From Mantamonas sphyraenae STR306 (lineage: Eukaryota > Protista > CRuMs): DNA of 64,000 nucleotides. A program made the position numbers and the translations under genes. The notes under the pieces are model-generated. The model did no database searches and was not told the origin of the DNA. It worked only from the letters and a program-made list of their open reading frames with translations. Position 1 is the stretch's first letter. Every line of letters starts with the position of its first letter. The stretch spans positions 124,001 to 188,000 of the forward strand of contig JAPMXV010000067.1 in the NCBI GenBank assembly GCA_026936335.1. Direction: 5' to 3'. Positions 14,524-49,536 of this stretch are shown here, one piece after another.

Positions 14524-16016
14524 ATGGGGGAGATCCAGAAGCGGACGGTGCAGTTCAACTCGGAGTACAACGTTGTGGTAGGTTATAGGGTTGGTTGGGT
14601 TCAAAGGTTGGGGAATCGGGTGTTGACACCCACGTGTGCAGGTTCCGCAAGAGTTGGCGCGCAGCGTGTTTCTGTGCCTCATTGCTCGGGAGTCGCATCT
14701 GAGCATCGAAGCAGTGCACGAGGACACGCGCAACAGTGCTCAGGAGGATGTGCAGCTGCGTTCGCGTTACGAAAACGACCGTGTGAGCAGCCGGACGCGG
14801 CAAATGAGCACGGCAGAGGGCAAGGGCAAACGCAGAGTGCTTGGGATGGACGAGGACGGCACGTATGTAGACAAGGGTGGTGTGACAGGAGAGGGCACAT
14901 GGACCACAACGCAAGGGACCGGCTCATCGTCGTCGTCGACATCGTCGGCAAGCGAATCGCAGGACGGGAGCGGCGGGGGCGACCCTGTGGCCAAGGTGAG
15001 CGAACTGCTGCTGGGCGTGTTGCCCGGGGTCACATCGCTGGAGTGCGGGGCGCATTCGTTCAGCAAGAAAGACTCGCCAGACGACCTGTGGTACCTAATG
15101 GCATCTGCGTCGGCCATGTCGTCGTCGGGAAAGCGGCTGGAAAGCGGAGGCGGAGAGCGAGCAGGTGCCACGCGGCGGGTGCAACCGTTTTGCAACATAT
15201 TTATTGCGGAGAATCTGGACAAGGCGACGCCTGAAATGCGTCACACGTTGTTCCAGGCCATGTTGACAGGGCGGATATCGTTTCGGGGCACGCTGCGCAC
15301 GTTGCCGGAGAACTTTCTGCTCATTTCGGTGATGCAGGAGGGCCTGTTTTTCAACGTGTTTGACGACAAACAACGCGAGGTGTTTCTGGTCCAGCTGACA
15401 CTGTCGAATGCACTGCGCATGGGCAGCATTCAGCCGTCAGGGATGGTTCGTCCCATCTACGAACTGGTGGAGGTCAACCACTACAAGACGCTGATCGACG
15501 AGCAGATCTACGTGAACCATGACATTGAACAGTACATACGAGACATTGTGGTGGTGCTGCGAAACCATCCGGCCGTGCATGCGGGCGCCTCGCCACGCTG
15601 TTTGTCTGCCCTGTACGAGGCTGCCAAGGTTCAGGCCATGCTCTTTGGGCAAATGTTTGTGACGCCCACGCATGTACTCACTGTGGCTGCGGATGTGCTC
15701 ACGCCTCGTGTGCTGCTGTATCCCTTTGGTACGTTTGAACACTACGCGTTGATTCCTCGGCGCGAGATCACCTTTCTCCAGAGCACGCCTGGGTTTCTTG
15801 GCGACAACACAAGTGACAGCACACTGGGAGGAGGAAGCGGCGGCGGCGGCGGCGGTGGCACCGACACACGGGTTGGGGGTGCCAACAGGGACAGGGACTC
15901 GCTGGAAACCGGCGGGACAATTGATCCACTTTTGGCTCGGTTCAAGTACCACGCAGGTGGAGGAGCAAGCAGTGGTGCAGGAGTTGGTGGTGGAGTCGGT
16001 GGGATGACAACGTTGA

Positions 16017-16047
<31 letters not shown>

Positions 16048-16402
16048 ATCGTCGTCGTCGTCTTCGTCGTCATCTTCGTCGTCGTCGTCGTCGTCTGCCT
16101 CGTCGGTGTTGGCGTCGACATTGACGGCAGGGTTGGACATGGGGACGGTGGGTGGAAGCAGCAGCGGAGGCGGAGTGGGAGGCGGTGGTGAGGATGGATC
16201 GATGCTGGATCGGAGCACGGCGTCGGCACACATGCTAAACTCGAGCAAGGCGAGGCGATTGGGAGCCAGGAAGCGACTGCAAAGGCGTTTGAGTGCAAAT
16301 GTGTCGCGGAATGAGATGCTGGACGAAGACCAACTGCCGGAGTACAGATCTGCGCGAGAGACAATTGTGCGCACACTGCAGGAGATTGTGCCGCCTTTGT
16401 GA
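14524..16402 (+). CDS. Degenerate MoxR/ChlI-like AAA+ protein with AAA-lid domain and poly-Ser tail; intron 14578-14641
   Basis: NIFIAENLDKATPEMRHTLFQAMLTGRISF..LPENFLLI and IYVNHDIEQYIRDIV..GASPR..AAKVQAMLFGQMFVTPTHV..VLTPRV match the MoxR core and lid. No Walker A GKT is present. Confidence 0.65.
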
Positions 16403-16504
16403 AAAATTGCAAACAAGTTGGCATGAATGAAGCTTATCGTGGGACAGTTGCAATGCTGGGTGATGTGTGCGGTGACGGAGGCAAAAGAGAAGTGGAACAC
16501 ATCG

Positions 16505-18142
16505 ATGGATCCTTTGGAAGATCTCCCAGACTCTGTGGCACATGAGATCGTGGGCATGCTTGGGCTGAGGGATCGGTATTCAGCAATGCGTGTGAGCAAG
16601 AAGTGGCACAGGAGGATAGTGGAAGCGCCCGTGTGGCGAGAGGACGCAGAGCAGCGGTGTGGAGGGGGGAGGGAGATGGAGCTGATGCAGGAGGCGATGC
16701 AGGCTCAGAGCATGGCACGGAGACAGGCAGTAGCGAGGAGGATAGGGCTGATGGGGCATGGGGACGGGGAGGAGAAGGCGAGGGGGCAGGAAGTTGTGGA
16801 GGAATTCGGGTGGTTTCACTTTTGCAGGCACATGTGGTGTCGACAGAAGGCAAGGCGGATCCGGACGCATGTGCGGCGTATGTGGTCGTATCCGCTCTTC
16901 CGAAAGACGGACATGGGCTTTGTGTACAAGGAGCTGGTGTTGGTGTTGGTGTGGATGCTGGCGACAAGGTTGGCGGACAAGAAACTGGGTGAGTGGGGAG
17001 TGATGGGAGTGCCACGAGGCATGGGATTGGCACTCGTGAGTGGACTGGGGTTCTTGCTTGTGCACAACTGGTTGCTGATTCGCAACCGGATGGCCCCGCT
17101 GCCTGTCGTTGTGTGCGCGTTGCACTTTGTTGTCAGCGTGTTCACAACGAGCGTGTGTACGACGGCTGCCAAGGCAATGTGGGGAGTGGATGTCAAGATT
17201 GTGCGAGACCTGGGCTTCTACGATCCTCTGGAGAAGACAAGCTCGGCAAACACGTGGTTGCCCCACTGGGCCCAGTTTGAGTGGGTGGCCATCCTGCTGG
17301 GAATCCCATTCACCCCCGTTGGGATTGTGATATTCGTGCAACATGTGGCTGCCGGAGTGTGGGGAATCCCCGAGGCGATCTCAAAGCTGCCGTGTGGATT
17401 GGCGAGGTGGTCTGAATTCGAGTTGAAGCAGGCGCTGTACTGCCTGTGCATTCCCCTTGTCGCGATCGCATTCTACCTGATGTCACCCAGGGTTGGCCCA
17501 CTCATGGTTGTGGGCGTCTTTTCGGTGTTGGGCACATACAGCACGTGCTCGGCCCTAGTGCAGTTTGTGCTGCTGCTGTACATGTTGCGGGATGTCGCGT
17601 GGCCACCCGAAGGCACCGATGGAGACGGCCAAGAGTACGATGACATGTACAGGGAGGTGACGGAGCTGACGACGGCCCTTGGCAGACATCCACTTGGCGA
17701 GGAGATTCCGCTGTGGACCCTGGAGCAGCTTCCTCCTGTCAAACTGTCCACGTTTGCGTTCACCTCAGTGGTGACACCTGTGGGGTACCTCATTCCACTC
17801 GTGATTGACCACGACCGCACGTTTGGCTTTCAATTCTCCACGGCGCTGTCGCAAACGTTGCCCTGGATTTGGGTGTCCATGTCCATGTCCTTCTGGCCGT
17901 TCATGCATCTTTCCCCAGGGGTCAGTGCATTGTGTGTGTTGACTGGGCCGTATGTCGCCACTTGGCTGGCGTATGCTTGGCGACGGCTGAGCAAGTTTGA
18001 TCCACGAGCGAGCCAGCCTCTGTGGCGCATCGAGGTGTTGCTGCAGAGATTGATGGACTCACGGGACTACAGTGACAACCAGCCCGCGTATGAACGGGTG
18101 GCTATGTGGGAGAAACGGCCATCGTGGCTGCTGGGGCGGTGA
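16505..18142 (+). CDS. F-box protein with C-terminal multi-TM domain (paralogue A)
   Basis: F-box-like N-terminus LEDLPDSVAHEIVGMLGLRDRYSAMRVSKKW..APVWR, followed by about 9-10 hydrophobic helices. Confidence 0.72.
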   Translation: MDPLEDLPDSVAHEIVGMLGLRDRYSAMRVSKKWHRRIVEAPVWREDAEQRCGGGREMELMQEAMQAQSMARRQAVARRIGLMGHGDGEEKARGQEVVEEFGWFHFCRHMWCRQKARRIRTHVRRMWSYPLFRKTDMGFVYKELVLVLVWMLATRLADKKLGEWGVMGVPRGMGLALVSGLGFLLVHNWLLIRNRMAPLPVVVCALHFVVSVFTTSVCTTAAKAMWGVDVKIVRDLGFYDPLEKTSSANTWLPHWAQFEWVAILLGIPFTPVGIVIFVQHVAAGVWGIPEAISKLPCGLARWSEFELKQALYCLCIPLVAIAFYLMSPRVGPLMVVGVFSVLGTYSTCSALVQFVLLLYMLRDVAWPPEGTDGDGQEYDDMYREVTELTTALGRHPLGEEIPLWTLEQLPPVKLSTFAFTSVVTPVGYLIPLVIDHDRTFGFQFSTALSQTLPWIWVSMSMSFWPFMHLSPGVSALCVLTGPYVATWLAYAWRRLSKFDPRASQPLWRIEVLLQRLMDSRDYSDNQPAYERVAMWEKRPSWLLGR

Positions 18143-18531
18143 CGGGGGCAAAGAGAAGAGAAACACAACAATGGATCCTTTGGAAGATCTCCCAGACTCT
18201 GTGGCACATGAGATCGTGGGCATGCTTGGGCTGAGGGATCGGTATTCAGCAATGCGTGTGAGCAAGAAGTGGCACAGGAGGATAGTGGAAGCGCCCGTGT
18301 GGCGAGAGGACGCGGAGCAGCGGTGTGGAGGGGGGAGGGAGATGGAGCTGATGCAGGAGGCGATGCAGGCTCAGAGCATGGCACGGAGACAGGCAGTAGC
18401 GAGGAGGATAGGGCTGATGGGGCATGGGGACGGGGAGGAGAAGGCGAGGGGGCAGGAAGTTGACGAGGAATTCGGGTGGTTTCACTTTTGCAGGCACATG
18501 TGGTGTCGACAGAAGGCAAGGCGGATCCGGA
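16505..18531 (+). repeat. 361-bp near-identical direct repeat (16505-16865 vs 18171-18531) encoding the F-box N-termini
   Basis: Read base by base: identical except about 3 substitutions (GCA/GCG and GTG/GAC), then identity stops abruptly after ..GGATCCGGA. Confidence 0.92.
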
Positions 18532-19805
18532 TTGCGTACAGACACGAGCAACGTGTACATCCATCCATGGGCACGATCTATGCGTTGGTGGTGGTCGCTG
18601 TGCTGTTCAGCGGGGCTGTGTTTCAGCTGGCGACAATCTGGGCCGATCTGGGCCTCGCTGGCGTTGGCTCCAACATGCTGCTTTCGTTGGTGGCTGGAAT
18701 GGGGTGGCTGCTTCTGAACAATTATATTCTGTTGCGATTGGGCGGTGACCCATTGGCTGTGATTCCGTGTGTGCTGCAGCTGCTGTGGGCGGCGTGGGTG
18801 ACAAGCTTGTGCGTTTGCTGGGGACATGAGTGGCCGGATGTGAAGATCGACAATCATGTGGGCAGGTACGACACGGAATCAGGTGGACCCACACTGGTGA
18901 GCACTGTGGAAGTGGGGATGGCCAAGATCGTGCTTGGGCGCATTTTCCTGTACGCTGGCATCGCCGTCTTTGTGCCCGTGTTGCCCATGCACACTCTTCA
19001 GCACGCATTCTTTCTGTTGAACAACGAATGGCAGGAAGCGGTGCAAGAAACGGCGACAAGGTGGCTGGGGTATCGTGAGGAGCCATTTTGGAAGGCATGG
19101 TTTGTGGGATTGACCGCTCTGATGAGCATAGTGGGCTTCGAGACCGGTGGAATCGACATGGAAGTGCTACTCGTCTTTGGGGCTTCTGCAATGTTGCTTG
19201 GGCTGTTCTCCATCGGGTGCTTGACGCAGACACTAGCCGTGCACGCATTGTGCACCATTCCCCCGTCAAGATGGTCGTACACCCAGATCTCAATGGACAA
19301 CTTGGCACTGCAACGAACGATGGACACTTTCTCCAATCTCAGCTTCCATGAAATTTTCCGCAGCACGCGGCCGGACGATTTGGTTCCAGAGAAATCGTTG
19401 CAGTCTGTGCGCAGGACGATTGGCCCGCTTATGACAAGCGCCGTTGGAATCTGGTTCGCGTACCTGCTACCTTACTATCTCAATCACGAAGTGATGTTTG
19501 GGGGCACGCATGGCGAGAGCTTTGCCCAGGTGTTTCCGTGGTGTGTGGGTCTGTGGCTGGCTGTGGCACAGGCGACAGTGGGGACGCCACGTCCAGCTGC
19601 AATCTTTGGGCCTTTGCTGGCAGGCTTGACCTTGCCACTGGTGTTGTATGTGGTGCGTGCACTCGTCAGCGATGCTGTCTTTGTCCGGCTGTGGGAAGTC
19701 GAGGAGCGCATTCAGCAGATCCTGGATGCGCGAGAATATGGGACTGAGTTTGACCAGATCAAGATGTGGGCACGGCGTCCAAAGTGGATGGTGAGGGGGA
19801 AGTAG
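18171..19805 (+). CDS. F-box protein with C-terminal multi-TM domain (paralogue B)
   Basis: Same F-box N-terminus as paralogue A, a divergent TM region, and a shared C-terminal motif LW..E..(L/I)Q..(M/L)D.R.Y...MW..RP.W. Confidence 0.72.
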   Translation: MDPLEDLPDSVAHEIVGMLGLRDRYSAMRVSKKWHRRIVEAPVWREDAEQRCGGGREMELMQEAMQAQSMARRQAVARRIGLMGHGDGEEKARGQEVDEEFGWFHFCRHMWCRQKARRIRIAYRHEQRVHPSMGTIYALVVVAVLFSGAVFQLATIWADLGLAGVGSNMLLSLVAGMGWLLLNNYILLRLGGDPLAVIPCVLQLLWAAWVTSLCVCWGHEWPDVKIDNHVGRYDTESGGPTLVSTVEVGMAKIVLGRIFLYAGIAVFVPVLPMHTLQHAFFLLNNEWQEAVQETATRWLGYREEPFWKAWFVGLTALMSIVGFETGGIDMEVLLVFGASAMLLGLFSIGCLTQTLAVHALCTIPPSRWSYTQISMDNLALQRTMDTFSNLSFHEIFRSTRPDDLVPEKSLQSVRRTIGPLMTSAVGIWFAYLLPYYLNHEVMFGGTHGESFAQVFPWCVGLWLAVAQATVGTPRPAAIFGPLLAGLTLPLVLYVVRALVSDAVFVRLWEVEERIQQILDAREYGTEFDQIKMWARRPKWMVRGK

Positions 19806-19871
19806 GTTGTGCGCCAGCGTGTGCACCACAAAACAACACAACGTGGAGATTCGCGAACTGAACAACAAGCA

Positions 19872-21756
19872 ATGTCAACCAACGATTACAACGACGCAGA
19901 GCTGGATGCACTGCACGCAACGATCATGCAGGGAGGTCTCATGCATTGTGGTGACCTGTTGTCCGAGATCTGCGACCGGAGCACGGTTTTCGCCGCCATT
20001 TGGGCTTTGGACCGCCTGACGACCACGGCCAGGGCCAACAACACGCCCGTCGAGCGCGGTGACATGGAGGAGGCACTGAATCAGGTCATGGAAGAGAATG
20101 GGATGCAACCGGTGTCGTGGAGTGGGCTTCTGCGCGATCATCTCGGGAAGCAAGGTGAGTGTGGGTTTGCTCGAATTTGACTGGACGGAATCCTGACTGA
20201 GAGGGGGACGGAATCCTGACATGGGGGGGGGGGGGTATTTTCAACGACGTTTGGACACGGTGACACATGTGCTGAAGGGATGGGGGAGGGCGATGGTCAG
20301 GATGGTGGACAGGATGCAGAAGAGGGTCTCAGTGGACTACTGCCTTGATGGGTGACCCAGGCATGGCACTGACAACGCACCACCACCGAGCAGACGCTAC
20401 ACAGGAAAAGATGGTGGAGGCCATCAGTGTGGATTGGGAGTGGAGCAAAGACAAGCCTGGTTCCATGGACCAGGTGGTTGAGACGATGGAGGAGACTCTG
20501 CACAATGCGTTGCGTGAACACTCTGTCGAGGGTATGGAAGTGCATGCGAATGACATGAAATCCATTCTTTTGGATCTGATGGAAAAGGACCGCGGGGATG
20601 TCCCAGGCAGCAGCAGCGGCAACGGAGAGGACCAGCGCACTCCTTGCTACATGATCTCCCTTGCCACCATCGCCGCAGAAGAGTACCTGGACAAACGGAA
20701 GGAACATGACGAGGGACAAAGTGATGTGCGGGAGGTTGTGGATGACAAGATCCTTGGGCAGGAGCTGCGGTGGCTGAAGGGTGATGTCCTCCCTCGTCGC
20801 TGTAGCGACGAGGCGATGTGCCAGGCACTGCATCACACGCACTTGGGGTTGCTGGGGATGCAATACCTTCAGAACGGGGAAGTACGGGCGTAAGTTCGGC
20901 GGGGGGTTGAGGTGTGGGTGTGATTGACAAAGGCTGACACGCAGGCGGGGGAATGGACAGACGCGATGCTGAGAACCGATGCGGGAGAGGGGTGTGGACA
21001 AAGGGCAGGCGTGAGATGATGCATTCGCAGGATGAGGGATTGAGCGCGCAGTACACGTTCAGTGTGGTCAAGCCGGATCTGCAAGTGTCTGTGGAGGTGA
21101 CGGGGTCAAAGGTGCCGATGATGGTTGCCCTGGAAGAAGGGAAGGGCCCAGGGAGCCGTGTGCAAGATTTCGAGGTGTTGCTGGCGCAGGGTGTGGCGTC
21201 GGTGTTGTGGCTGCAGCTGTACGTGGAGTGCCCGGACACGGAGGTTCCGATCTACCTGCGCTACTTCGAGGGCACGCGGACGGTGGTGGTGATCCTGTGG
21301 TACAAGTTGGAGGCTGTGGGAGCGGGAGTGACGGAGGTGTGGTACTCGGAGGGAGTAGTGGACACCGACAAGGCGGAGGAGGAGACGTACATGCTGCTGA
21401 AGGTGGAGGAGATCTACATGCAGTTTGTGTCGAGGGTGGTGGAGAAGCTGGAGAAGGAGGCAAAGGCACGGGAAAGGATGTTGGTGGGGATGGAAGTGCT
21501 GCGACAAGGGGCGGACAACAAGAATCTAAGCTCCGGGACGTACGAGTGGAACGGGAAGGGAGACATGGTGAAGGTGATGGTGGAGAAGAAGGAGGAGGAG
21601 GGTGGCAAGGAAGGTGGGGAGGAGGAGGGGCGTGAGCTGGAGGAGATGGCGAAACAGGCAGGGGTGGCCGATGTGAGCGAGGAGGTGGTGGACAAGGTTG
21701 TGGAGGGACTGCAGACGGAGGAGGCAGGGGCACGTGGGTGGATTGAGTGGGAGTGA
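19872..21756 (+). CDS. Kinase-less copy of the array gene (helical header + PD-(D/E)xK nuclease-like domain), 524 aa; exons 19872-20154, 20394-20889, 20961-21756
   Basis: GTGAGT and GTAAGT donors with CTGAC branch points. The spliced CDS is 1575 nt and in frame. Retains SDEAM, KPDLQV, ALEEGKG and LLAQG, but lacks ~203 aa of kinase present in the array copies. Confidence 0.7.
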
Positions 21757-21883
21757 ATGGGTGGAGGCTAGGAGCGTGCGTCAGCCCACGCACGCACCCG
21801 CAAAGAGGCGCCCACACAGACACAAGCACGCAAGCTCACAAGCACAATGGAAACAACATGATCCATTCGCACACACTTCCCCT

Positions 21884-21970
21884 TCACTCACTCACTCACT
21901 CACTCACTCACTCACTCACTCACTCACTCACTCACTCACTCACTCACTCACTCACTCACTCACTCACTCA
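21884..21970 (+). repeat. (CACT)n microsatellite between convergent 3' ends; recurs as (GAGT)n in array units at ~37428-37486, 41400-41463, 45374-45437, 49354-49409, and degenerate at ~33478-33510
   Basis: Directly visible tetranucleotide repeat. Confidence 0.95.
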
Positions 21971-21990
21971 CACGCCACGGTGTTTGATCC

Positions 21991-24900
21991 TCACAATCCC
22001 GTCTCCACCTTCCACATCTTCACCAGGCGATCATTGCCTCCAGTCACCATCAGTCCGTGTGCACTGTTGACACAAACACAGTTGGCACTGCCCGAGTGGG
22101 CTGTAAAACGCTCGACGAGAGAGCAGTCTTGGGCTTTCCACCGCGCCACGCTCCCATCCTTGCCTGTGCTCACCACATCCTCTGCGTTGTACGAACACAG
22201 TCCCGTCACCCAGTTGCTGTGTGCTCGCTCGATCACATCCACACTGCCTGCCTCCGTTCCCATCGTCCACCGCTTGATCGTCTTGTCTCGCGACCCGCTG
22301 AACAAGTACGCATCCCCATGCACACACAGCGCATTCACTCCATCGTAGTGCAGAGCACTCAGCGTCGCCTGGTACTCCAGCGACTCACGTTCGTACATGT
22401 TCACCGTGTGATCCCGCGAACCGCTAAACAGCCGCTCCTTCGACCCTGCCAGTGCAAACACAGAGCCCTTGTGGCCATGCAGCCCCGTCAGGATGCGAAT
22501 CGATCGGAATGTCTTCAGGTCCCACACCTTGATTGTCGAGTTGTCCAGTCCTGCGGCAAGCCGATCGCCCATCACCATGACACTGTGCACCTCCGACCCG
22601 GCTGCCAGCGACTTGATGCACAGGCCACTGTCCACATCCCACACCTTGACGCTCTTGTCCTGCGAGCCACTCAACAGCAGCGACCGTCCTGTGTGCATCG
22701 TCACGTCCCGCACAAACCCGTGGTGCCCACTGAGGTCAACCACCGCTCCGCCCGTTTCCACATCCCACACCTTGACCGTTGTGTCCTGTGATGCGCTAAA
22801 TACATGTTCTTCGTGGCTGTACACTGCGTACACAAAGCCGTGGTGGCCCGACAACGTTATCACCGGCTCCACCTGCAGTTGGTCCTCCCCATCGTTCTCC
22901 GTCGACCCATCCTCCCCTTTGTTATGGCCACCGGCCCCCTCGTCATCTTCACCTGCACTCTTGCCACCTCCGCCACCACTGCTGCTGGCGCTGCTGCTGC
23001 TCATCCCTGCATCTGTGACACGCGTGCTCAGCTGCAGCCTCGAAAACACATCCATGGTCGAACTGCTACGTCGCCGTTCCTCGCTTGCAGCTCCCGTTAC
23101 ACTGTTGCTGTTGCTGCCATGTCCCTGCGAAGCAGCAGTCACCAAACCGCCGCTCAGGCGACGCCCACTTGTGTACGGAGAGCGAGTCGATTCACGTGGC
23201 AAGCTAATGGTTGGACTGGGCGTGCGGCTGTGATTGCGTCCACTCGGGGCGGGCGGGGGCGTCTGTTGCTGCTCTTTGGTTGCTTTGGTCCCTACACCAG
23301 CCACCAGGCCATCGCCTTGGTCGTTCATCACACCGTACAGGGAACGTCTCGTGAGGTGCGGGCTTGGACTGCTGGTGCGTTCATCGCCATTCAACACGGT
23401 ACCCGTTGCATGGGCGCTGATGACACCTCCGCTGTTGCTGCGTTGCGCTTGCAGTTGCGGCAGAAGAAGGCGTCCCTCCTCGCTTCGGCTCTCCAGCGCA
23501 AGCGTCAACTTGTGGATCTGTGTCTCGTACGAGCTCACTTGCCGCAGAGCCTCCGCATAGCGTTGCTCCTGTGCCCGCACACGCGACTGCAGCTCCTCTG
23601 CAAGTTGCGTGTAGTACCGCTCGCGTTCGCTCAACACGCCGATTTGCTCCTCACGCATCACCAGTGTTAATCGCAGGCGCTCCACCTCCTCGTCATCGTG
23701 CGTTTCACGCAACTCTGTCCCGTCGCTGCTGTTGGATGCGTCGGATGCATTGTTCCCTGCACTGCGTTCCTTCTGTTCCAGTTTCTCCAGCTGGTCAAAG
23801 AGAAACAACACCTCCACCTCGTGCTGTCGTCTTGCCTCTGTCAGTTGTCTCTGGTGATCCATCTTCATCACCTCAACACTCTTTTCCAGTCGCTTGGCCT
23901 CCTCCAAGCGCAACTTTTGTTCCTCGATGCGCCTTCGGTACGTGCTTTCCTTCTCTCTCGTGTCGATGATGGTTATGAGTGCGTGTCGCAACATCGCACG
24001 TGCCTGTTGCTCGTCCAGCCCTGCAACCTTGCCCTCGTCCGCAACCGCGTCGGTGGCTTCAATCAGCTCGTTTGACGCTTGCTCGATGGCGTCGCTCACG
24101 TACTCCATGTTCTCCCCCAGTGTTTCCATCTCTTCGTTCAGCGTCTCCAACTGCATGCAAACTTCCGCGTACTCTGGTCCATCCGTCAGCTTCTGCATGT
24201 TCAACTCCACACGAATCTCTTCCTTCTCCGCACGCTCTTTCCGCAGTGCCTCCATTGCAACCGCCATCTTTTCTCGCTTGCCGAGCTGCACTTCCAGTCG
24301 CTCTGCTGCTGCGCGTTTGCGAAGGTGTACACGCACCTGCGTGTCCAGCCACGACCGTACAAACTTGCTGTCCTTCAGCCTACCTCCGCCGTTGCCACTT
24401 TTCCCGCTTCCTCCACCGCTGCTCCCTTTGCGTCGCTCCCGCTTCGGTAGCAGTGATCCATCCTCCTCCGCCGCGCTTGCCGTGCTCCCACGACGCGATC
24501 CGCTGCTGCTCCCCACACCCGTGCGTCTCGATGCGCTGCGAGGCCGTAGCTTTGGACTGCCTCCCATGCTGCCTCTCCTCCGAGGTGTGGAGTACGGCGA
24601 CGACCCTGGCGAACCACCCAATCCCGTGCCGCTCCCTCCGCCGCTTGTGACACCTCCGCCTCCCCCTGCGCCTCCGCTCCCGCTCACAATCTTGAGCTTC
24701 TGCCTCAAGCTCACAATCTCCTCCATACGCCTCTTCAGCATCTGTTCCTGCTTCTGCTTGTGTGCCTTCAGCTTGCTGATCACCCTCTCGCTGCGTCGTT
24801 GTGCAGTACGCAAACTCGCCATCTCCTTGTCTGCGTTTCGCCGCAGTTTTGCGTACTGCTTTGCTTCGCGGCTCGCTTTCTTGGCCAGATCGGCCTTCCG

Positions 24901-33052: not shown

Positions 33053-33623
33053 GTTTGCCACTGCCATGCGTGTTTCTGCCATCCACATACTGCGCACATG
33101 CAACTCACACACTCTCTTACGCAATTTCACGCATGGAAACACGTTGAAAACACAGCGAAACACGAGAGGATGCCCTGTCGATCTCTGAGCGAACTCCAAT
33201 CCGCTTCTTCCCGTCGTCGCAGGGGACGCATGGGGCTGCGGAAGCGCGTAAAGAGCCTCATGGTGTGCGCACGGGGGGCTGATGAGAGACGGACGGACGG
33301 TTCCCTGTGAAATCCATCAGGGAGTGTGGCGCGGGAAAGGGCAGAACTGCTCTCTCGTCCATCGGGCAGTGCCAACTTCAACAGTGCACACGGACTGATG
33401 GTGACTGGAGGCAATGATCGCCTGGTGAAGATGTGGAAGGTGGAGACCGGATCGTGAGGATCGAACACAGTCGCGTGTGAGTGAGTGAGGAGTGAATGAG
33501 TGAATGAGTGAAGGGAATGTGTGTGCGAATGGATCATGTTGTTTCCATTGTGCTTGTGAGCTTGCGTGCTTGTGTCTGTGTGGGCGCCTCTTTGCGGGTG
33601 CGTGTGTAGGCTGACGCACGCTC

Positions 33624-36160
33624 CTAGCCTCCACCCATGCACTCCCACTCAATCCACCCACGTGCCCCTGCCTCCTCCGTCTGCAGTCCCTCCACAACCT
33701 TGTCCACCACCTCCTCGCTCACATCGGCCACCCCTGCCTGTTTCGCCATCTCCTGCAGCTCACGCACAACCCACCCTGTGCTGAACAAGTCCGCCTGCTG
33801 CATCTCCTCCTTCCTTGCACGCATCCTCCCCTCCCTCAGCTCTGGTGCTGCATACTCGTCCGTCACTCGGAATCTCGACTTGCGCCCCTCCACACACTCC
33901 ACACCCACGTTCTCCAAATCAATCAGCCTCACCTCTCCCTTGTGCCACACCATGTTGGCCGCCTTGATGTCCAAATGCCACTTGCCTGCCCCGTGCAGTG
34001 CCTCCACACACTCCTTCACTCCTCTCAGCGCCTTTGACAGCGTCACCCCTTTCGGTAACCCACTGTCAACCACCTTGCACTTCGCCATCCCCACCACTCC
34101 AATCTCCACACCCCCCGCTCGTCCTCGCTCCACCACCCACGGACGCAGTGCCCACCCAGCCCCTGTGCCCTCACCCAGCTCTTTGTACGCTGCCCACTCC
34201 GCACTGTCTCCACGCATGCTCTTCCACCACACCGCCTGCCCATTCAGCCATCCCGTGCCCGTTCCGAACAGCTTCTCCTCGTACAAGAAACATGATGCTT
34301 TCTTCACCCCCACCTTCGTCAGCATCCGCATCACCTCGTCCGTCACCAGACCCTGCATGCTCTCTTCCGGTCCCTGCTCCTCCTCTCCACCATTCTTGTC
34401 ACCCTCCTCCTTCTTCTTCTCCTCCACCACCTTCACCATGTCTCCCTTCCCGTTCCACTCGTACGTCCCGGAGCTTAGATTCTTGTTGTCCGCCCCTTTT
34501 CGAAGCTCTTCCATCCGCAACAACGTCTTTGCCCGCGCCTTTGCCTCCTTCTCCAGCTTCTCCACCACCCTCGACACAAACTGCATGTAGATCTCCTCCA
34601 CCTTCAGCAGCATGTACGTCTCCTCCTCCGCCTTGTCGGTGTCCACTACTCCCTCCGAGTACCACACCTCCGTCACTCCCGCTCCCACAGCCTCCAACTT
34701 GTACCACAGGATCACCACCACCGTCCGCGTGCCCTCGAAGTAGCGCAGGTAGATCGGAACCTCCGTGTCCGGGCACTCCACGTGCAGCTGCAGCCGCAAC
34801 ACCGACGCCACACCCTGCGCCAGCAACACCTCGAAATCTTGCACACGGCTCCCTGGGCCCTTCCCTTCTTCCAGGGCAACCATCATCGGCACCTTTGACC
34901 CGGTCACCTCCACAGACACTTGCAGATCCGGCTTGACCACACTGAATGTGTACTGCGCCCTTCTCCCCTCCCCCTCCTGCGAATGCGCCTCACGCCTTCC
35001 CTTTGTCCACACCCCTCTCCCGCATCGGTTCTCAGCATACATCCTGCCCATTCACCCGCCTGCGTGTCAGCCTTTGTCAATTACACCCACACCTCAACCC
35101 CCCGCCGAACTTACGCCCGTACATCCCCGTCCTGAAGGTATTGCATCCCCAGCGACCCCAAGTGCGTGTGATGCAGTGCCTGGCACATCGCCTCGTCGCT
35201 ACAGCGACGAGGGAGGACATCACCCTTCATCCACCGCAGCTCCTGCCCAAGGATCTTGTCAGCCACTACCTCCCGCTCGTCACTTGTTCCCTCGTCACAT
35301 TCCTTCCGTTTGTCCAGGTACTCTTCTGCGGCGATGGTGTCAAGGGAGATCATGTAGCAAGGAGTGCGCTGGTCCTCTCCGTTGCCGCTGCCGCCGTTGC
35401 CGCTGCTGCTGCTGCTGCTGCCGCTGCTGCTGCCGGGGACATTCCCGCGGTCCTTTTCCATCAGACCCAAAAGAATGGATTTCATGTCCTTCGCATGCAC
35501 TTGCATACCCCCGACAGAGTGTTCACGCAATGCATTGCGCAGGGTCTCCTCCATCGTCTCAACCACCTGGTCCATGGAACCAGGCTTGTCTTTTCTCCAC
35601 TCAAAACCCACACTGATTTTCTCCACCACCTTCTCCTGTGTAAAGTCTGCTCGGTGGTGGTGCGGTGTCAGTGCCATGCCTGGGTCACCCATCAAGACGG
35701 TAGTCCACTGAGTCCAGAACCCACCCTCTTCCGCATCCTGTCCACCATCCTGACCACCGCCCTGCCCCATCCCTTCTGCACATGTGTCGCCGTGTCCAAA
35801 CGTCGTTGAAAATACCCAACCCCAGTGTCAGGATTCCGTCCTGTCAATTCGAGCAAACCCACACTCACCTTGCTTCCCGAGATAATCGCGCAAAAGCGCA
35901 CTCCACGACACCCGTTGCATCCCATACTCTTCCATGTCCTGGTTCAGTGCCTCTTCCATCTCACCGCGTTCGACGGGCGTGTCGTTGGCCCTGGCAGTGG
36001 CAGTTACGCGGGTCAAGGCCACTACGGCGACGCCATATCCGACATTCCCAATTTCGCCGCAGATCTCGGACAACAGGTCACCACAATGCATGAGACCTCC
36101 CTGCATGATCCGTGCGTGCAGTGCATCCAGCTCTGCGTCGTTGTGCTCGTTTGCTGACAT
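33624..36160 (-). CDS. Header + PD-(D/E)xK nuclease-like + protein kinase (Crinkler/CR- or Spok-like architecture), copy 1, 747 aa; exons 36160-35869, 35646-35115, 35043-33624
   Basis: Spliced CDS is 2244 nt and in frame. Nuclease-like motifs SDE(helix)..KPDLQV..ALEEGKG..AQG. Kinase motifs AVWWK, AEW, HLDIKAAN, LIDLE, YAAPE, ADLFSTG. Confidence 0.8.
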
Positions 36161-36680
36161 TGGTTGGTGTCGCGATTCTCCACCTTGTTCTTGTTGTGGT
36201 GCACACCCTGGCGCACAACCCTCTTCCTCGTCAACGTCGACCATCCCCCCCCTTTGGTTCTCTTTGTCCTCTACCTCACTCCTTGTCATCTCCCTGCGCT
36301 CACACACAGCACTGTGCGTGTGTTTCCTCCGCCCACAATCCTCCTCGTCCAACTGCTCCACCCCTGCTTGCCCCCTGTTCCTAGCACCGATTCGCGCCTG
36401 TGTCCAGCACGCCACATCCGCACCGCACGTGCAAAGCACCCTTGCGTCAGTCCCCAACCACGTCTACGCCCTAGGACGGCCGGTGAACAGAGAGCGCGCC
36501 ACGTACCCGCACACCGTTCTCACACCCACACACACACCCTCCCAGCCTCCCAGCACCCCTTCCGTATACGCCCACAATCACACACCAACCTCACACCCCA
36601 CACACGCTCATCCCAAACTCACATCCCACACCGCCACAGACATGTTTCGGTTTGTTCTTGGCCCGCCCGGCGCCCTCCGT

Positions 36681-37407
36681 GTTTGTGCGGGACGAGCCAT
36701 TGCACGCAGGACGGTCGCTGCTGTTGAGTGGCTCGCAGGACAAGAGCGTCAAGGTGTGGGATGTGGACAGTGGCCTGTGCATCAAGTCGCTGGCAGCCGG
36801 GTCGGAGGTGCACAGTGTGATGGTGATGGGCGATCGGCTTGCCGCAGGACTGGACAACTCGACAATCAAGGTGTGGGACCTGAAGACATTCCGATCGATT
36901 CGCATCCTGACGGGGCTGCATGGCCACAAGGGCTCTGTGTTTGCACTGGCAGGGTCGAAGGAGCGGCTGTTTAGCGGTTCGCGGGATCACACGGTGAACA
37001 TGTACGAACGTGAGTCGCTGGAGTACCAGGCGACGCTGAGTGCTCTGCACTACGATGGAGTGAATGCGCTGTGTGTGCATGGGGATGCGTACTTGTTCAG
37101 CGGGTCGCGAGACAAGACGATCAAGCGGTGGACGATGGGAACGGAGGCAGGCAGTGTGGATGTGATCGAGCGAGCACACAGCAACTGGGTGACGGGACTG
37201 TGTTCGTACAACGCAGAGGATGTGGTGAGCACAGGCAAGGATGGGAGCGTGGCGCGGTGGAAAGCCCAAGACTGCTCTCTCGTCGAGCGTTTTACAGCCC
37301 ATTCGGGCAGTGCCAACTGTGTGTGTGTCAACAGTGCACACGGACTGATGGTGACTGGAGGCAATGATCGCCTGGTGAAGATGTGGAAGGAGGAGACGGG
37401 ATTGTGA
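36681..37407 (+). pseudogene. Duplicated 3' WD40 fragment of the KIF21-like kinesin (unit copy A; frame open but no own in-frame ATG at the junction)
   Basis: Near-identical to the reverse complement of 21991-22717 (GRSLLLSGSQDKSVKVWD..RLVKMWK.ETGL). Confidence 0.85.
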
Positions 37408-37598
37408 GGATCAAACACCGTGGCGTGTGAGTGAGTGAGTGAGTGAGTGAGTGAGTGAGTGAGTGAGTGAGTGAGTGAGTGAGTGAAGGGAATGTGTGTG
37501 CGAATGGATCATGTTGTTTCCATTGTGCTTGTGAGCTTGCGTGCTTGTGTCTGTGTGGGCGCCTCTTTGCGGGTGCGTGTGTAGGCTGACGCACGCTC

Positions 37599-40132
37599 CT
37601 AGCCTCCACCCATGCACTCCCACTCAATCCACCCACGTGCCCCTGCCTCCTCCGTCTGCAGTCCCTCCACAACCTTGTCCACCACCTCCTCGCTCACATC
37701 GGCCACCCCTGCCTGTTTCGCCATCTCCTGCAGCTCACGCACAACCCACCCTGTGCTGAACAAGTCCGCCTGCTGCATCTCCTCCTTCCTTGCACGCATC
37801 CTCCCCTCCCTCAGCTCTGGTGCTGCATACTCGTCCGTCACTCGGAATCTCGACTTGCGCCCCTCCACACACTCCACACCCACGTTCTCCAAATCAATCA
37901 GCCTCACCTCTCCCTTGTGCCACACCATGTTGGCCGCCTTGATGTCCAAATGCCACTTGCCTGCCCCGTGCAGTGCCTCCACACACTCCTTCACTCCTCT
38001 CAGCGCCTTTGACAGCGTCACCCCTTTCGGTAACCCACTGTCAACCACCTTGCACTTCGCCATCCCCACCACTCCAATCTCCACACCCCCCGCTCGTCCT
38101 CGCTCCACCACCCACGGACGCAGTGCCCACCCAGCCCCTGTGCCCTCACCCAGCTCTTTGTACGCTGCCCACTCCGCACTGTCTCCACGCATGCTCTTCC
38201 ACCACACCGCCTGCCCATTCAGCCATCCCGTGCCCGTTCCGAACAGCTTCTCCTCGTACAAGAAACATGATGCTTTCTTCACCCCCACCTTCGTCAGCAT
38301 CCGCATCACCTCGTCCGTCACCAGACCCTGCATGCTCTCTTCCGGTCCCTGCTCCTCCTCTCCACCATTCTTGTCACCCTCCTCCTTCTTCTTCTCCTCC
38401 ACCACCTTCACCATGTCTCCCTTCCCGTTCCACTCGTACGTCCCGGAGCTTAGATTCTTGTTGTCCGCCCCTTTTCGAAGCTCTTCCATCCGCAACAACG
38501 TCTTTGCCCGCGCCTTTGCCTCCTTCTCCAGCTTCTCCACCACCCTCGACACAAACTGCATGTAGATCTCCTCCACCTTCAGCAGCATGTACGTCTCCTC
38601 CTCCGCCTTGTCGGTGTCCACTACTCCCTCCGAGTACCACACCTCCGTCACTCCCGCTCCCACAGCCTCCAACTTGTACCACAGGATCACCACCACCGTC
38701 CGCGTGCCCTCGAAGTAGCGCAGGTAGATCGGAACCTCCGTGTCCGGGCACTCCACGTGCAGCTGCAGCCACAACACCGACGCCACACCCTGTGCCAGCA
38801 ACACCTCGAAATCTTGCACACGGCTCCCTGGGCCCTTCCCTTCTTCCAGGGCAACCATCATCGGCACCTTTGACCCGGTCACCTCCACAGACACTTGCAG
38901 ATCCGGCTTGACCACACTGAATGTGTACTGCGCCCTTCTCCCCTCCCCCTCCTGCGAATGCGCCTCACGCCTTCCCTTTGTCCACACCCCTCTCCCGCAT
39001 CGGTTCTCAGCATACATCCTGCCCATTCACCCGCCTGCGTGTCAGCCTTTGTCAATTACACCCACACCTCAACCCCCCGCCGAACTTACGCCCGTACATC
39101 CCCGTCCTGAAGGTATTGCATCCCCAGCGACCCCAAGTGCGTGTGATGCAGTGCCTGGCACATCGCCTCGTCGCTACAGCGACGAGGGAGGACATCACCC
39201 TTCAGCCACCGCAGCTCCTGCCCAAGGATCTTGTCATCCACTACCTCCCGCTCGTCACTTGTTCCCTCGTCATGTTCCTTCCGTTTGTCCAGGTACTCTT
39301 CTGCGGCGATGGTGTCAAGGGAGATCATGTAGCAAGGAGTGCGCTGGTCCTCTCCGTTGCCGCTGCCGCCGTTGCCGCTGCTGCCGCTGCTGCTGCTGCT
39401 GCTGCCTGGGACATCCCCGCGGTCCTTTTCCATCAGATCCAAAAGAATGGATTTCATGTCCTTCGCATGCACTTGCATACCCCCGACAGAGTGTTCACGC
39501 AACGCATTGCGCAGGGTCTCCTCCATCGTCTCAACCACCTGGTCCATGGAACCAGGCTTGTCTTTTCTCCACTCAAAACCCACACTGATGGCCTCCACCA
39601 CCTTCTCCTGTGTAAAGTCTGCTCGTGGTGGTGCGGTGTCAGTGCCATGCCTGGGTCACCCATCAAAGACGGTAGTCCACTGAGTCCAGAACCCACCCTC
39701 TTCCGCATCCTGTCCACCATCCTGACCACCGCCCTGCCCCATCCCTTCTGCACATGTGTCGCCGTGTCCAAACGTCGTTGAAAATACCCAACCCCAGTGT
39801 CAGGATTCCGTCCTTCAAATTCGAGCAAACCCACACTCACCTTGCTTCCCGAGATGATCGCGCAAAAGCCCACTCCACGACACCCGTTGCATCCCATTCT
39901 CTTCCATGACCTGGTTCAGTGCCTCTTCCATCTCACCGAGTTCGATGGGCGTGTCGTTAGTCCTGGCAGTGGCAGTCACGCGGACCAAGGCCGCTGCGGC
40001 GACGCCATATCCGACATTCCCAATTTCGCCGCAGATCTCGGACAACAGGTCACCACAATGCATGAGACCTCCCTGCATGATCCGTGCGTGCAGTGCATCC
40101 AGCTCTGCGTCGTTGTGCTCGTTTGCTGACAT
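37599..40132 (-). CDS. Header-nuclease-kinase gene, copy 2
   Basis: Same exon structure and motifs as copy 1. The small indels I saw fall in the predicted intron 1. Confidence 0.78.
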
Positions 40133-40651
40133 TGGTTGGTGTCGCGATTCTCCACCTTGTTCTTGTTGTGGTGCACACCCTGGCGCACAACCCTCTTCCT
40201 CGTCAACGTCGACCATTCCCCCCCTTTGGTTCTCTTTGTCCTCTATCTCACTCCTTGTCATCTCCCTGCGCTCACACACAGCACTGTGCGTGTGTTTCCT
40301 CCGCCACAATCCTCCTCGTCCAACTGCTCCACCCCTGCTTGCCCCCTGTTCCTAGCACCGATTCGCGCCTGTGTCCAGCACGCCACATCCGCACCGCACG
40401 TGCAAAGCACCCTTGCGTCAGTCCCCAACCACGTCTACGCCCTAGGACGGCCGGTGAACAGAGAGCGCGCCACGTACCCGCACACCGTTCTCACACCCAC
40501 ACACACACCCTCCCAGCCTCCCAGCACCCCTTCCGTATACGCCCACAATCACACACCAACCTCACACCCCACACACGCTCATCCCAAACTCACATCCCAC
40601 ACCGCCACAGACATGTTTCGGTTTGTTCTTGGCCCGCCCGGCGCCCTCCGT

Positions 40652-41380
40652 GTTTTGTGCGCGGACGAGCCATTGCACGCAGGACGGTCGCTGCTGTTGA
40701 GTGGCTCGCAGGACAAGAGCGTCAAGGTGTGGGATGTGGACAGTGGCCTGTGCATCAAGTCGCTGGCAGCCGGGTCGGAGGTGCACAGTGTGATGGTGAT
40801 GGGCGATCGGCTTGCCGCAGGACTGGACAACTCGACAATCAAGGTGTGGGACCTGAAGACATTCCGATCGATTCGCATCCTGACGGGGCTGCATGGCCAC
40901 AAGGGCTCTGTGTTTGCACTGGCAGGGTCGAAGGAGCGGCTGTTTAGCGGTTCGCGGGATCACACGGTGAACATGTACGAACGTGAGTCGCTGGAGTACC
41001 AGGCGACGCTGAGTGCTCTGCACTACGATGGAGTGAATGCGCTGTGTGTGCATGGGGATGCGTACTTGTTCAGCGGTCGCGAGACAAGACGATCAAGCGG
41101 TGGACGATGGGAACGGAGGCAGGCAGTGTGGATGTGATCGAGCGAGCACACAGCAACTGGGTGACGGGACTGTGTTCGTACAACGCAGAGGATGTGGTGA
41201 GCACAGGCAAGGATGGGAGCGTGGCGCGGTGGAAAGCCCAAGACTGCTCTCTGTCGTCGAGCGTTTTACAGCCCATTCGGGCAGTGCCAACTGTGTGTGT
41301 GTCAACAGTGCACACGGACTGATGGTGACTGGAGGCAATGATCGCCTGGTGAAGATGTGGAAGGAGGAGACGGATTGTGA
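40652..41380 (+). pseudogene. Kinesin WD40 3' fragment, copy B (with indels)
   Basis: Same sequence as copy A with small indels. Confidence 0.82.
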
Positions 41381-41575
41381 GGATCAAACACCGTGGCGTG
41401 TGAGTGAGTGAGTGAGTGAGTGAGTGAGTGAGTGAGTGAGTGAGTGAGTGAGTGAGTGAGTGAAGGGGAAGTGTGTGCGAATGGATCATGTTGTTTCCAT
41501 TGTGCTTGTGAGCTTGCGTGCTTGTGTCTGTGTGGGCGCCTCTTTGCGGGTGCGTGTGTAGGCTGACGCACGCTC

Positions 41576-44108
41576 CTAGCCTCCACCCATGCACTCCCAC
41601 TCAATCCACCCACGTGCCCCTGCCTCCTCCGTCTGCAGTCCCTCCACAACCTTGTCCACCACCTCCTCGCTCACATCGGCCACCCCTGCCTGTTTCGCCA
41701 TCTCCTGCAGCTCACGCACAACCCACCCTGTGCTGAACAAGTCCGCCTGCTGCATCTCCTCCTTCCTTGCACGCATCCTCCCCTCCCTCAGCTCTGGTGC
41801 TGCATACTCGTCCGTCACTCGGAATCTCGACTTGCGCCCCTCCACACACTCCACACCCACGTTCTCCAAATCAATCAGCCTCACCTCTCCCTTGTGCCAC
41901 ACCATGTTGGCCGCCTTGATGTCCAAATGCCACTTGCCTGCCCCGTGCAGTGCCTCCACACACTCCTTCACTCCTCTCAGCGCCTTTGACAGCGTCACCC
42001 CTTTCGGTAACCCACTGTCAACCACCTTGCACTTCGCCATCCCACCACTCCAATCTCCACACCCCCGCTCGTCCTCGCTCCACCACCCACGGACGCAGTG
42101 CCCACCCAGCCCCTGTGCCCTCACCCAGCTCTTTGTACGCTGCCCACTCCGCACTGTCTCCACGCATGCTCTTCCACCACACCGCCTGCCCATTCAGCCA
42201 TCCCGTGCCCGTTCCGAACAGCTTCTCCTCGTACAAGAAACATGATGCTTTCTTCACCCCCACCTTCGTCAGCATCCGCATCACCTCGTCCGTCACCAGA
42301 CCCTGCATGCTCTCTTCCGGTCCCTGCTCCTCCTCTCCACCATTCTTGTCACCCTCCTCCTTCTTCTTCTCCTCCACCACCTTCACCATGTCTCCCTTCC
42401 CGTTCCACTCGTACGTCCCGGAGCTTAGATTCTTGTTGTCCGCCCCTTTTCGAAGCTCTTCCATCCGCAACAACGTCTTTGCCCGCGCCTTTGCCTCCTT
42501 CTCCAGCTTCTCCACCACCCTCGACACAAACTGCATGTAGATCTCCTCCACCTTCAGCAGCATGTACGTCTCCTCCTCCGCCTTGTCGGTGTCCACTACT
42601 CCCTCCGAGTACCACACCTCCGTCACTCCCGCTCCCACAGCCTCCAACTTGTACCACAGGATCACCACCACCGTCCGCGTGCCCTCGAAGTAGCGCAGGT
42701 AGATCGGAACCTCCGTGTCCGGGCACTCCACGTGCAGCTGCAGCCACAACACCGACGCCACACCCTGTGCCAGCAACACCTCGAAATCTTGCACACGGCT
42801 CCCTGGGCCCTTCCCTTCTTCCAGGGCAACCATCATCGGCACCTTTGACCCGGTCACCTCCACAGACACTTGCAGATCCGGCTTGACCACACTGAATGTG
42901 TACTGCGCCCTTCTCCCCTCCCCCTCCTGCGAATGCGCCTCACGCCTTCCCTTTGTCCACACCCCTCTCCCGCATCGGTTCTCAGCATACATCCTGCCCA
43001 TTCACCCGCCTGCGTGTCAGCCTTTGTCAATTACACCCACACCTCAACCCCCCGCCGAACTTACGCCCGTACATCCCCGTCCTGAAGGTATTGCATCCCC
43101 AGCGACCCCAAGTGCGTGTGATGCAGTGCCTGGCACATCGCCTCGTCGCTACAGCGACGAGGGAGGACATCACCCTTCAGCCACCCGCAGCTCCTGCCCA
43201 AGGATCTTGTCATCCACTACCTCCCGCTCGTCACTTGTTCCCTCGTCATGTTCCTTCCGTTTGTCCAGGTACTCTTCTGCGGCGATGGTGTCAAGGGAGA
43301 TCATGTAGCAAGGAGTGCGCTGGTCCTCTCCGTTGCCGCTGCCGCCGTTGCCGCTGCTGCCGCTGCTGCTGCTGCTGCTGCCTGGGACATCCCCGCGGTC
43401 CTTTTCCATCAGATCCAAAAGAATGGATTTCATGTCCTTCGCATGCACTTGCATACCCCCGACAGAGTGTTCACGCAACGCATTGCGCAGGGTCTCCTCC
43501 ATCGTCTCAACCACCTGGTCCATGGAACCAGGCTTGTCTTTTCTCCACTCAAAACCCACACTGATGGCCTCCACCACCTTCTCCTGTGTAAAGTCTGCTC
43601 GGTGGTGGTGCGGTGTCAGTGCCATGCCTGGGTCACCCATCAAGACGGTAGTCCACTGAGTCCAGAACCCACCCTCTTCCGCATCCTGTCCACCATCCTG
43701 ACCACCGCCCTGCCCCATCCCTTCTGCACATGTGTCGCCGTGTCCAAACGTCGTTGAAAATACCCAACCCCAGTGTCAGGATTCCGTCCTTCAAATTCGA
43801 GCAAACCCACACTCACCTTGCTTCCCGAGATGATCGCGCAAAAGCCCACTCCACGACACCCGTTGCATCCCATTCTCTTCCATGACCTGGTTCAGTGCCT
43901 CTTCCATCTCACCGAGTTCGATGGGCGTGTCGTTAGTCCTGGCAGTGGCAGTCACGCGGACCAAGGCCGCTGCGGCGACGCCATATCCGACATTCCCAAT
44001 TTCGCCGCAGATCTCGGACAACAGGTCACCACAATGCATGAGACCTCCCTGCATGATCCGTGCGTGCAGTGCATCCAGCTCTGCGTCGTTGTGCTCGTTT
44101 GCTGACAT
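41576..44108 (-). CDS. Header-nuclease-kinase gene, copy 3 (apparent homopolymer frameshifts at ~42040-42065 and ~43185)
   Basis: Same gene. The single-base indels sit in C runs, so they are probably consensus errors; a pseudogene is the alternative. Confidence 0.65.
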
Positions 44109-44628
44109 TGGTTGGTGTCGCGATTCTCCACCTTGTTCTTGTTGTGGTGCACACCCTGGCGCACAACCCTCTTCCTCGTCAACGTCGACCATTCCCCCCC
44201 TTTGGTTCTCTTTGTCCTCTATCTCACTCCTTGTCATCTCCCTGCGCTCACACACAGCACTGTGCGTGTGTTTCCTCCGCCCACAATCCTCCTCGTCCAA
44301 CTGCTCCACCCCTGCTTGCCCCCTGTTCCTAGCACCGATTCGCGCCTGTGTCCAGCACGCCACATCCGCACCGCACGTGCAAAGCACCCTTGCGTCAGTC
44401 CCCAACCACGTCTACGCCCTAGGACGGCCGGTGAACAGAGAGCGCGCCACGTACCCGCACACCGTTCTCACACCCACACACACACCCTCCCAGCCTCCCA
44501 GCACCCCTTCCGTATACGCCCACAATCACACACCAACCTCACACCCCACACACGCTCATCCCAAACTCACATCCCACACCGCCACAGACATGTTTCGGTT
44601 TGTTCTTGGCCCGCCCCGCGCCCTCCGT

Positions 44629-45354
44629 GTTTGTGCCGGACGAGCCAATGCACGCAGGACGGTCGCTGCTGTTGAGTGGCTCGCAGGACAAGAGCGTCAA
44701 GGTGTGGGATGTGGACAGTGGCCTGTGCATCAAGTCGCTGGCAGCCGGGTCGGAGGTGCACAGTGTGATGGTGATGGGCGATCGGCTTGCCGCAGGACTG
44801 GACAACTCGACAATCAAGGTGTGGGACCTGAAGACATTCCGATCGATTCGCATCCTGACGGGGCTGCATGGCCACAAGGGCTCTGTGTTTGCACTGGCAG
44901 GGTCGAAGGAGCGGCTGTTTAGCGGTTCGCGGGATCACACGGTGAACATGTACGAACGTGAGTCGCTGGAGTACCAGGCGACGCTGAGTGCTCTGCACTA
45001 CGATGGAGTGAATGCGCTGTGTGTGCATGGGGATGCGTACTTGTTCAGCGGGTCGCGAGACAAGACGATCAAGCGGTGGACGATGGGAACGGAGGCAGCA
45101 GTGTGGATGTGATCGAGCGAGCACACAGCAACTGGGTGACGGGACTGTGTTCGTACAACGCAGAGGATGTGGTGAGCACAGGCAAGGATGGGAGCGTGGC
45201 GCGGTGGAAAGCCCAAGACTGCTCTCTCGTCGAGCGTTTTACAGCCCATTCGGGCAGTGCCAACTGTGTGTGTGTCAACAGTGCACACGGACTGATGGTG
45301 ACTGGAGGCAATGATCGCCTGGTGAAGATGTGGAAGGAGGAGACGGGATTGTGA
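44629..45354 (+). pseudogene. Kinesin WD40 3' fragment, copy C
   Basis: Same sequence as copy A with one small deletion near 45098. Confidence 0.82.
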
Positions 45355-45549
45355 GGATCAAACACCGTGGCGTGTGAGTGAGTGAGTGAGTGAGTGAGTG
45401 AGTGAGTGAGTGAGTGAGTGAGTGAGTGAGTGAGTGAAGGGGAAGTGTGTGCGAATGGATCATGTTGTTTCCATTGTGCTTGTGAGCTTGCGTGCTTGTG
45501 TCTGTGTGGGCGCCTCTTTGCGGGTGCGTGTGTAGGCTGACGCACGCTC

Positions 45550-49334: not shown

Positions 49335-49536
49335 GGATCAAACACCGTGGCGTGTGAGTGAGTGAGTGAGTGAGTGAGTGAGTGAGTGAGTGAGTGAGTG
49401 AGTGAGTGAAGGGGAAGTGTGTGCGAATGGATCATGTTGTTTCCATTGTGCTTGTGAGCTTGCGTGCTTGTGTCTGTGTGGGCGCCTCTTTGCGGGTGCG
49501 TGTGTAGGCTGACGCACGCTCCTAGCCTCCACCCAT

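Follow-up and report, generated by a model that had tools for sequence, protein, structure and literature searches.

A gene at positions 19872 to 21756 of the 64-kb window from Mantamonas sphyraenae (the window being the whole stretch of DNA that was analyzed) carries a derived, in-frame deletion that removed most of its protein kinase, while its 524-codon frame, splice signals, and nuclease motif are intact. This solo copy was compared by BLASTN and MAFFT with the five units (A1 to A5) of a tandem array on the minus strand (positions 33320 to 52573, ~3975 nt per unit), each of which holds a gene for a header, a putative nuclease, and a Pfam-recognized kinase domain. In the alignment of the six copies, exactly 609 nt (203 codons) are missing from the solo copy between positions 21627 and 21628, and the residues at the junction read GGEEE followed directly by GRELEEMAKQ. 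Positions 19784 to 21627 align with every array unit, and positions 21628 to 22720 align 609 nt further along; the comparison with A3 shows 607 nt, owing to two 1-nt gaps. The preliminary description of this locus had placed a clean in-frame loss of about 203 codons at roughly 21627 to 21631, in agreement with our alignments. The segment absent from the solo copy is present in every other family member and corresponds to positions 34376 to 33768 in A1, 38351 to 37743 in A2, 42326 to 41720 in A3, 46301 to 45693 in A4, and 50274 to 49666 in A5. Outside the array, it is also found in three paralogs on contig C22 (41% identity) and in distant relatives on contigs C73, C76, and C77. Because the C22 paralogs carry the segment, the difference is a deletion in the solo copy rather than an insertion in the array.

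The deletion took away kinase subdomains I to IX, that is, the Gly loop, the VAIK-type lysine, and the HLDIKAAN, DLE, APE, and DLFSTG motifs, and spared the last 42 kinase residues, which retain the subdomain X-XI motif (L..EE.G.RGW). The earlier claim that the whole kinase is gone is correct for all of the catalytic elements but not for this C-terminal remnant.

Gene model and genomic setting of the solo copy

M. sphyraenae is a free-living marine flagellate that feeds on bacteria, and Mantamonas is a deep-branching eukaryote of the CRuMs supergroup, near the base of Amorphea. The window is eukaryotic in character, with 59% GC and short introns that have GTGAGT or GTAAGT donors and CTGAC branch sites. 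Its source is the FALCON assembly of a diploid genome, described as 25.06 Mb in 78 contigs with 59.19% GC (PMC10492846); the 78 contigs sum to 25,061,354 bases. The reads were PacBio CLR, and polishing was done with Racon and Pilon (PMC10492846), which, together with 1-nt homopolymer indels in A3 and A4 that may well be errors, would speak for the deletion being an assembly artifact. Such an artifact is extremely improbable, however: the solo locus is flanked by unique genes and fits within the read N50 of 11 kb, the solo and array sequences differ by 5 to 15% on the 5' side of the junction, and a collapse would not yield an exact 609-nt in-frame loss inside locus-specific sequence.

Several origins of the deletion and of the gene were considered and rejected. 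The microhomology at the junction is merely a G run of 1 to 3 nt, within which the alignment is ambiguous, and this is too little for a clean microhomology deletion. An intron-like or retro-processing origin of the deletion does not fit the lack of GT..AG ends and the retention of the introns. The solo copy is likewise not a processed (retro-) pseudogene, as both introns are present with intact signals and the homology runs through the 3' untranslated region (UTR) into the neighboring gene.

Immediately upstream, positions 14636 to 19871 hold four consecutive same-strand genes, twin F-box/membrane genes among them, with only 28 to 102 nt between a stop and the next ATG; either these genes are co-transcribed or they are clustered unusually tightly. 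The spacer between the upstream stop and the solo ATG is 66 nt, and the idea that the gene had lost its promoter, based on so short a spacer, was rejected given the spacing of these same-strand neighbors.

The solo gene lies on the plus strand, with its ATG at 19872 and its stop codon TGA at 21754 to 21756. Exon 1 (19872 to 20154; header, 94 codons plus 1 nt, phase 1) has an ATG and a GTGAGT donor that are kept in all six copies. Predicted intron 1 (20155 to 20393, 239 nt) was redefined; it has a CTGAC branch site at 20369 to 20373 and a cag/A acceptor at 20393/20394, which is in frame with exon 1, lies 20 nt past the branch A, and occupies the same place in the paralog L008. All indels between copies 5' of exon 2 whose length is not a multiple of 3 (26, 10, and 1 nt) sit within this intron. 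Two other acceptors were discarded: at 20277/20278, the first AG past an upstream CTGAC, the solo copy would acquire a stop through a 10-nt indel, and at 20360/20361, which is in frame, the branch site is poor and A2 looked frameshifted. Exon 2 (20394 to 20889, 496 nt) encodes the rest of the header and holds a (GCA/GGC)n tract that is 33 to 36 nt shorter than that of the array. Intron 2 (20890 to 20960, 71 nt; GTAAGT .. CTGAC .. acag/A, phase 2) is identical in position and phase in L008. Exon 3 up to the junction (20961 to 21627) encodes the putative PD-(D/E)xK nuclease domain and an acidic linker (21442 to 21627), and its tail (21628 to 21756) encodes the kinase remnant and the stop. The TGA is shared with A5, whereas A1 to A4 have TGC at the aligned positions (33639 to 33641, 37614 to 37616, 41591 to 41593, and 45565 to 45567) and extend for a few extra codons. 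The six copies agree fully or almost fully in the GTGAGT and GTAAGT donors, the CTGAC branch sites, and both acceptors, and with intron 1 at 20155 to 20393 the whole frame is open; the preserved splice sites and reading frame reported previously are hence upheld. Exons were searched and folded separately, and joined coordinates served for frame bookkeeping only.

Encoded domains and range of the family

The N-terminal header is an orphan in our searches. Pfam at E values up to 10 returned only a sub-threshold DUF7715 match for exons 1 and 2, and an Atlas search with exon 2 returned nothing. The domain that precedes the linker in exon 3 has no Pfam match either; its assignment comes from conserved residues and predicted structure. 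Eight residues are invariant across four subfamilies that share 16 to 35% identity (E59, G60, K61, Q85, V44, F102, G104, and Y114, exon 3 numbering), and Asp39, 20 residues before E59, is replaced only in the paralog L010. The arrangement of Asp39 and E59-G60-K61 has the spacing expected for a PD-(D/E)xK site. The solo copy keeps all of the family-invariant nuclease residues; the family alignment places the putative nuclease residues at codons 21076 to 21078 (Asp), 21136 to 21138 (Glu), 21142 to 21144 (Lys), and 21214 to 21216 (Gln) on the plus strand. Of the KPD..EEGK..AQ motif named in the preliminary description, the KPD..EEGK part is kept, whereas "AQ" varies within the family, whose invariant glutamine is Q85.

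The Atlas language-model features link the domain to ascomycete clusters of PF20516 (PDDEXK_12) with a score of 0.91 and 164 shared features, which we take as a lead only. The predicted order of secondary structure elements (strand-strand-strand-helix-strand) fits a PD-(D/E)xK fold, and the two AF2 models are of low confidence (pLDDT 47 and 56). A Foldseek search with the nuclease-domain model gave no match. In two VIA searches, the BpuSI nuclease domain ranked third (Z 4.5) and first (Z 5.5), both within noise, and the few other restriction-enzyme domains among the matches of the first search were within noise as well. The exon 3 domain probably adopts a PD-(D/E)xK nuclease fold.

The array kinase, in contrast to the nuclease domain, is recognized directly. 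It matches the Pfam family PF00069 with 36.8 bits (cutoff, 31.7 bits), and the family profile finds MAPK and STE20 kinases as its best matches in the PDB (E value, ~4e-16); it is a true eukaryotic protein kinase (ePK).

A profile search of 1.84 billion protein representatives gave 75 matches at E values up to 0.001, all but two of which cover the kinase core only. Relatives with the same architecture were P0003 and P0013 from the profile search and P0076 from a word search with P0003, all of them transcripts of Mantamonas plastica with Pfam matches to the kinase only. A word search with the array protein found no match, and the search with P0003 found nothing beyond P0076. Within the M. sphyraenae genome, a further subfamily is formed by L024, L025, and L026 (contigs C77, C73, and C76), single-ORF proteins of ~509 residues that the family profile detected via the kinase only; they read KPD .. 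AEGK .. Q, followed by an Asn/Lys-rich linker and a kinase with HGDIKPGN, DLE, and APE. As far as these sequence comparisons reach, the family is Mantamonas specific, and its proteins consist of an orphan header followed by a putative PD-(D/E)xK nuclease and then a protein kinase of the eukaryotic type. The nuclease part without a kinase was found neither elsewhere in the same genome nor among the 1.84 billion representatives.

In L010 (contig C22, 185.6 to 187.0 kb), KPA replaces KPD, with an alanine in place of the putative catalytic aspartate. Judged from this substitution, L010 may be a nuclease-inactive, kinase-bearing natural variant, the mirror image of the solo copy.

Tandem array and history of the locus

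The array genes are uninterrupted in the assembly in three of the five units (A1, A2, and A5). A3 is broken by 1-nt indels at 43186 (exon 2) and at kinase positions equivalent to 34116 and 34090 of A1, and A4 by 1-nt indels at 47364 (exon 2) and, near the C terminus, at the position equivalent to 33668 of A1. Each of these lies in a homopolymer of 2 to 5 nt, and in a 20-kb near-identical array assembled from PacBio CLR reads they may be consensus errors rather than mutations. Of the five kinase-bearing copies counted in the preliminary description, all contain the kinase DNA, but only A1, A2, and A5 read through as assembled.

The sequence downstream of the solo gene reveals the direction of copying. 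Positions 21757 to 22720 contain a 3' UTR with a (TCAC)n tract and then the true 3' end of a kinesin-WD40 gene (minus strand, from 21991). A copy of these positions, ~99% identical and including the 3' end of the kinesin-WD40 gene, is present in A2 to A5, and A1 is without the kinesin fragment. The kinesin 3'-end copies in A2 to A5 indicate that the sequence went from the solo locus into the array, which is therefore a segmental duplication. The (TCAC)n microsatellite (21875 to 21970) varies in length among the solo and array copies. In each unit, a spacer of ~436 nt (44190 to 44625 and the equivalent places) separates the captured kinesin tail from the start of the following unit at its 5' end, and the solo locus has nothing equivalent to this spacer.

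The solo copy and the array diverge in a mosaic pattern. Synonymous divergence (dS) is ~0.2 in exon 1 and the first 40 codons of exon 3, 0.04 to 0.07 in exon 2, 0.01 to 0.02 in the nuclease core (~99% identity), and 0.085 in the linker just before the junction. Exon 1 is the most divergent part of the solo copy, differing by 14 to 15% from the array, and the header is equally variable within the array itself (A1 versus A5). At the junction, divergence steps from 8 to 9% in the preceding 186 nt to ~1 to 2% through the 3' UTR (2% in the kinase tail), and the step is significant (Fisher p, 1e-3 to 2e-5). We infer that the mosaic arose by repeated gene conversion, with the deletion serving as a tract boundary; a step exactly at the junction is what would be expected if the deletion limits conversion tracts. 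If so, the deletion would predate the most recent exchange of sequence with the array.

Fate of the kinase-less copy and known nuclease-kinase systems

No purifying selection on the solo copy was detectable from its dN/dS values against the array copies. The ratio is 0.74 to 0.82 against the intact array copies (Fisher p, 0.2 to 0.4 versus 1), 0.9 to 1.2 in exon 2, and ~1 in the linker; the substitutions between the solo copy and the array are not polarizable with the C22 paralogs, which at 41% identity are too divergent. The nuclease core is conserved owing to recent gene conversion and not to selection, because its dS equals the divergence of the noncoding 3' flank (~1 to 2%). In simulations, the probability of no stop was 0.53 after 16 random substitutions and 0.12 after 55; an open frame is therefore unremarkable for the numbers of substitutions that possibly postdate the deletion, and it carries little statistical weight. 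An in-frame outcome of the deletion itself is a one-in-three event by chance. In addition, the kinase-less state does not seem to persist over time, because no other kinase-less relative was found in the same genome or among the 1.84 billion representatives.

Other observations count against decay. Exonic indels relative to the array are all multiples of 3 (9, 33 to 36, 3, 3, and 609 nt), and the 524-codon frame, the splice signals, and the invariant nuclease residues are all kept. Full-length C22 paralogs have dN/dS values of 0.46 to 0.93, so that high ratios are ordinary in this family and do not signal decay. Effector and toxin families also often retain domain-loss variants.

Weighing these points, we give about an even chance to the solo copy being a young kinase-loss derivative that is most likely not under selection, being a nuclease-only remnant that evolves neutrally or a pseudogene at an early stage. 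The solo gene has as its neighbor the kinesin gene that supplied the 3' end found in the array units, and gene conversion appears to have swapped patches of sequence between it and the array; one net in-frame deletion of 609 nt took out kinase subdomains I to IX, and the product, if transcribed, would be a header and nuclease protein without a kinase of its own. A functional nuclease-only paralog, independent of rescue by the array, is a less probable alternative and on the whole unlikely; it could act as an effector variant that has escaped kinase control or as a regulator or decoy toward the full-length copies. The open frame, the indel lengths, the conserved splice sites, and the catalytic-type residues would suit such a role, and a header 14 to 15% off the array is what a specificity of its own would produce, but the array headers vary just as much (A1 versus A5), selection is not detectable, the own genome and the 1.84 billion representatives contain no other kinase-less member, and the 42-residue kinase tail resembles debris rather than design. 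[quoted passage not shown]

The preliminary description had favored a poison without its own antidote, neutralized in trans by the array kinases, a dependence that would have favored amplification of the array. Its analogy is Spok, where the logic was shown experimentally: the toxicity of the kinase-less Spok3(1-490) is relieved by wild-type Spok3 in trans, and killing is lost with the nuclease substitution K240A (PMC6660238), which bears out the earlier statement that the Spok nuclease is needed for killing and the kinase for resistance. The domain order of the Mantamonas family parallels that of Spok, and with nuclease cores ~99% identical, a regulator that recognizes one copy would recognize the other. 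We nonetheless regard this explanation as improbable, as the Spok hallmarks are missing (a Cys/His cluster is absent, and the kinase is an ePK with APE rather than Kdo-like), kinases with a protective role are not known from this family or from CR proteins, and neither selection on the solo copy nor an older kinase-less lineage was detected, the latter in the same genome and the 1.84-billion-protein library. The array units hold the kinesin fragment of a segmental duplication, and two of the five are interrupted in the assembly, so amplification of the array needs no explanation by antidote dosage. The specific case of a natural poison-only allele, in which an expressed solo copy encodes an active nuclease that is tolerated only via array kinases acting in trans, with toxin and antidote loci ~12 kb apart on one chromosome, appears quite improbable. 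The incipient pseudogene that had been offered as an alternative fits at least as well as the poison without an antidote.

In conflict proteins that join an REase and a kinase, such as Crinkler/CR and Spok, the kinase may be a regulator, an antidote, or an effector. A kinase-less copy close to full-length copies with a ~99% identical nuclease core is a ready-made comparison for toxicity and rescue, and the family places the nuclease-kinase architecture in Mantamonas. Should the poison-only explanation be true, Spok-like logic would extend far beyond fungi, into CRuMs, and the REase and kinase module of CR proteins would gain a role in self-protection. Should the solo copy merely decay, the locus, though otherwise ordinary, would still show clearly how tandem duplication, gene conversion, and the loss of a domain play out in a compact protist genome.

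The full-length family resembles Crinkler/CR proteins (e.g., Phytophthora infestans CRN8) in the order of a variable header, a putative REase-like domain, and a protein kinase and in being multicopy and fast evolving, with the header as the most variable part. The kinase that follows the REase in Crinkler/CR proteins is present in the array and the paralogs and lost in the solo copy. Unlike in Crinkler/CR proteins, no Ubl-type, LxLFLAK/HVLVxxP, or other CR header was recognized (Pfam with exons 1 and 2, Atlas with exon 2), and the family profile matched no described CRN/CR protein among the 1.84 billion representatives. M. sphyraenae, moreover, is a free-living bacterivore and not a pathogen.

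With Spok, a meiotic drive system of Podospora, the family shares a (here putative) nuclease followed by a kinase in one protein, and no other Spok hallmark was found. In the array proteins, the stretch between the two domains is an acidic/Gly linker with a single cysteine, unlike the layout of Spok, which has a coiled coil and a Cys/His cluster (C-x3-C-x13-C-x5-H-x7-H) between nuclease and kinase (PMC6660238). The array kinase is ePK-like (HLDIKAAN, DLE, APE, and the subdomain XI motif) and not ELK/Kdo-like as in Spok. We know of nothing reported on sex or meiotic drive in Mantamonas. Membership of the family in Crinkler/CR or Spok is not supported; by analogy, it is possible that the family works like one of them, and the solo copy, known here from its sequence, is a natural counterpart of the engineered Spok3(1-490).

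The solo copy also resembles ordinary domain-loss paralogs and unitary pseudogenes, which it matches in having an internal deletion in one copy of a recently duplicated, gene-converting family, a near-neutral rate, and no older counterparts. Unlike in pseudogenes, its frame, splice sites, and catalytic-type residues are still intact.
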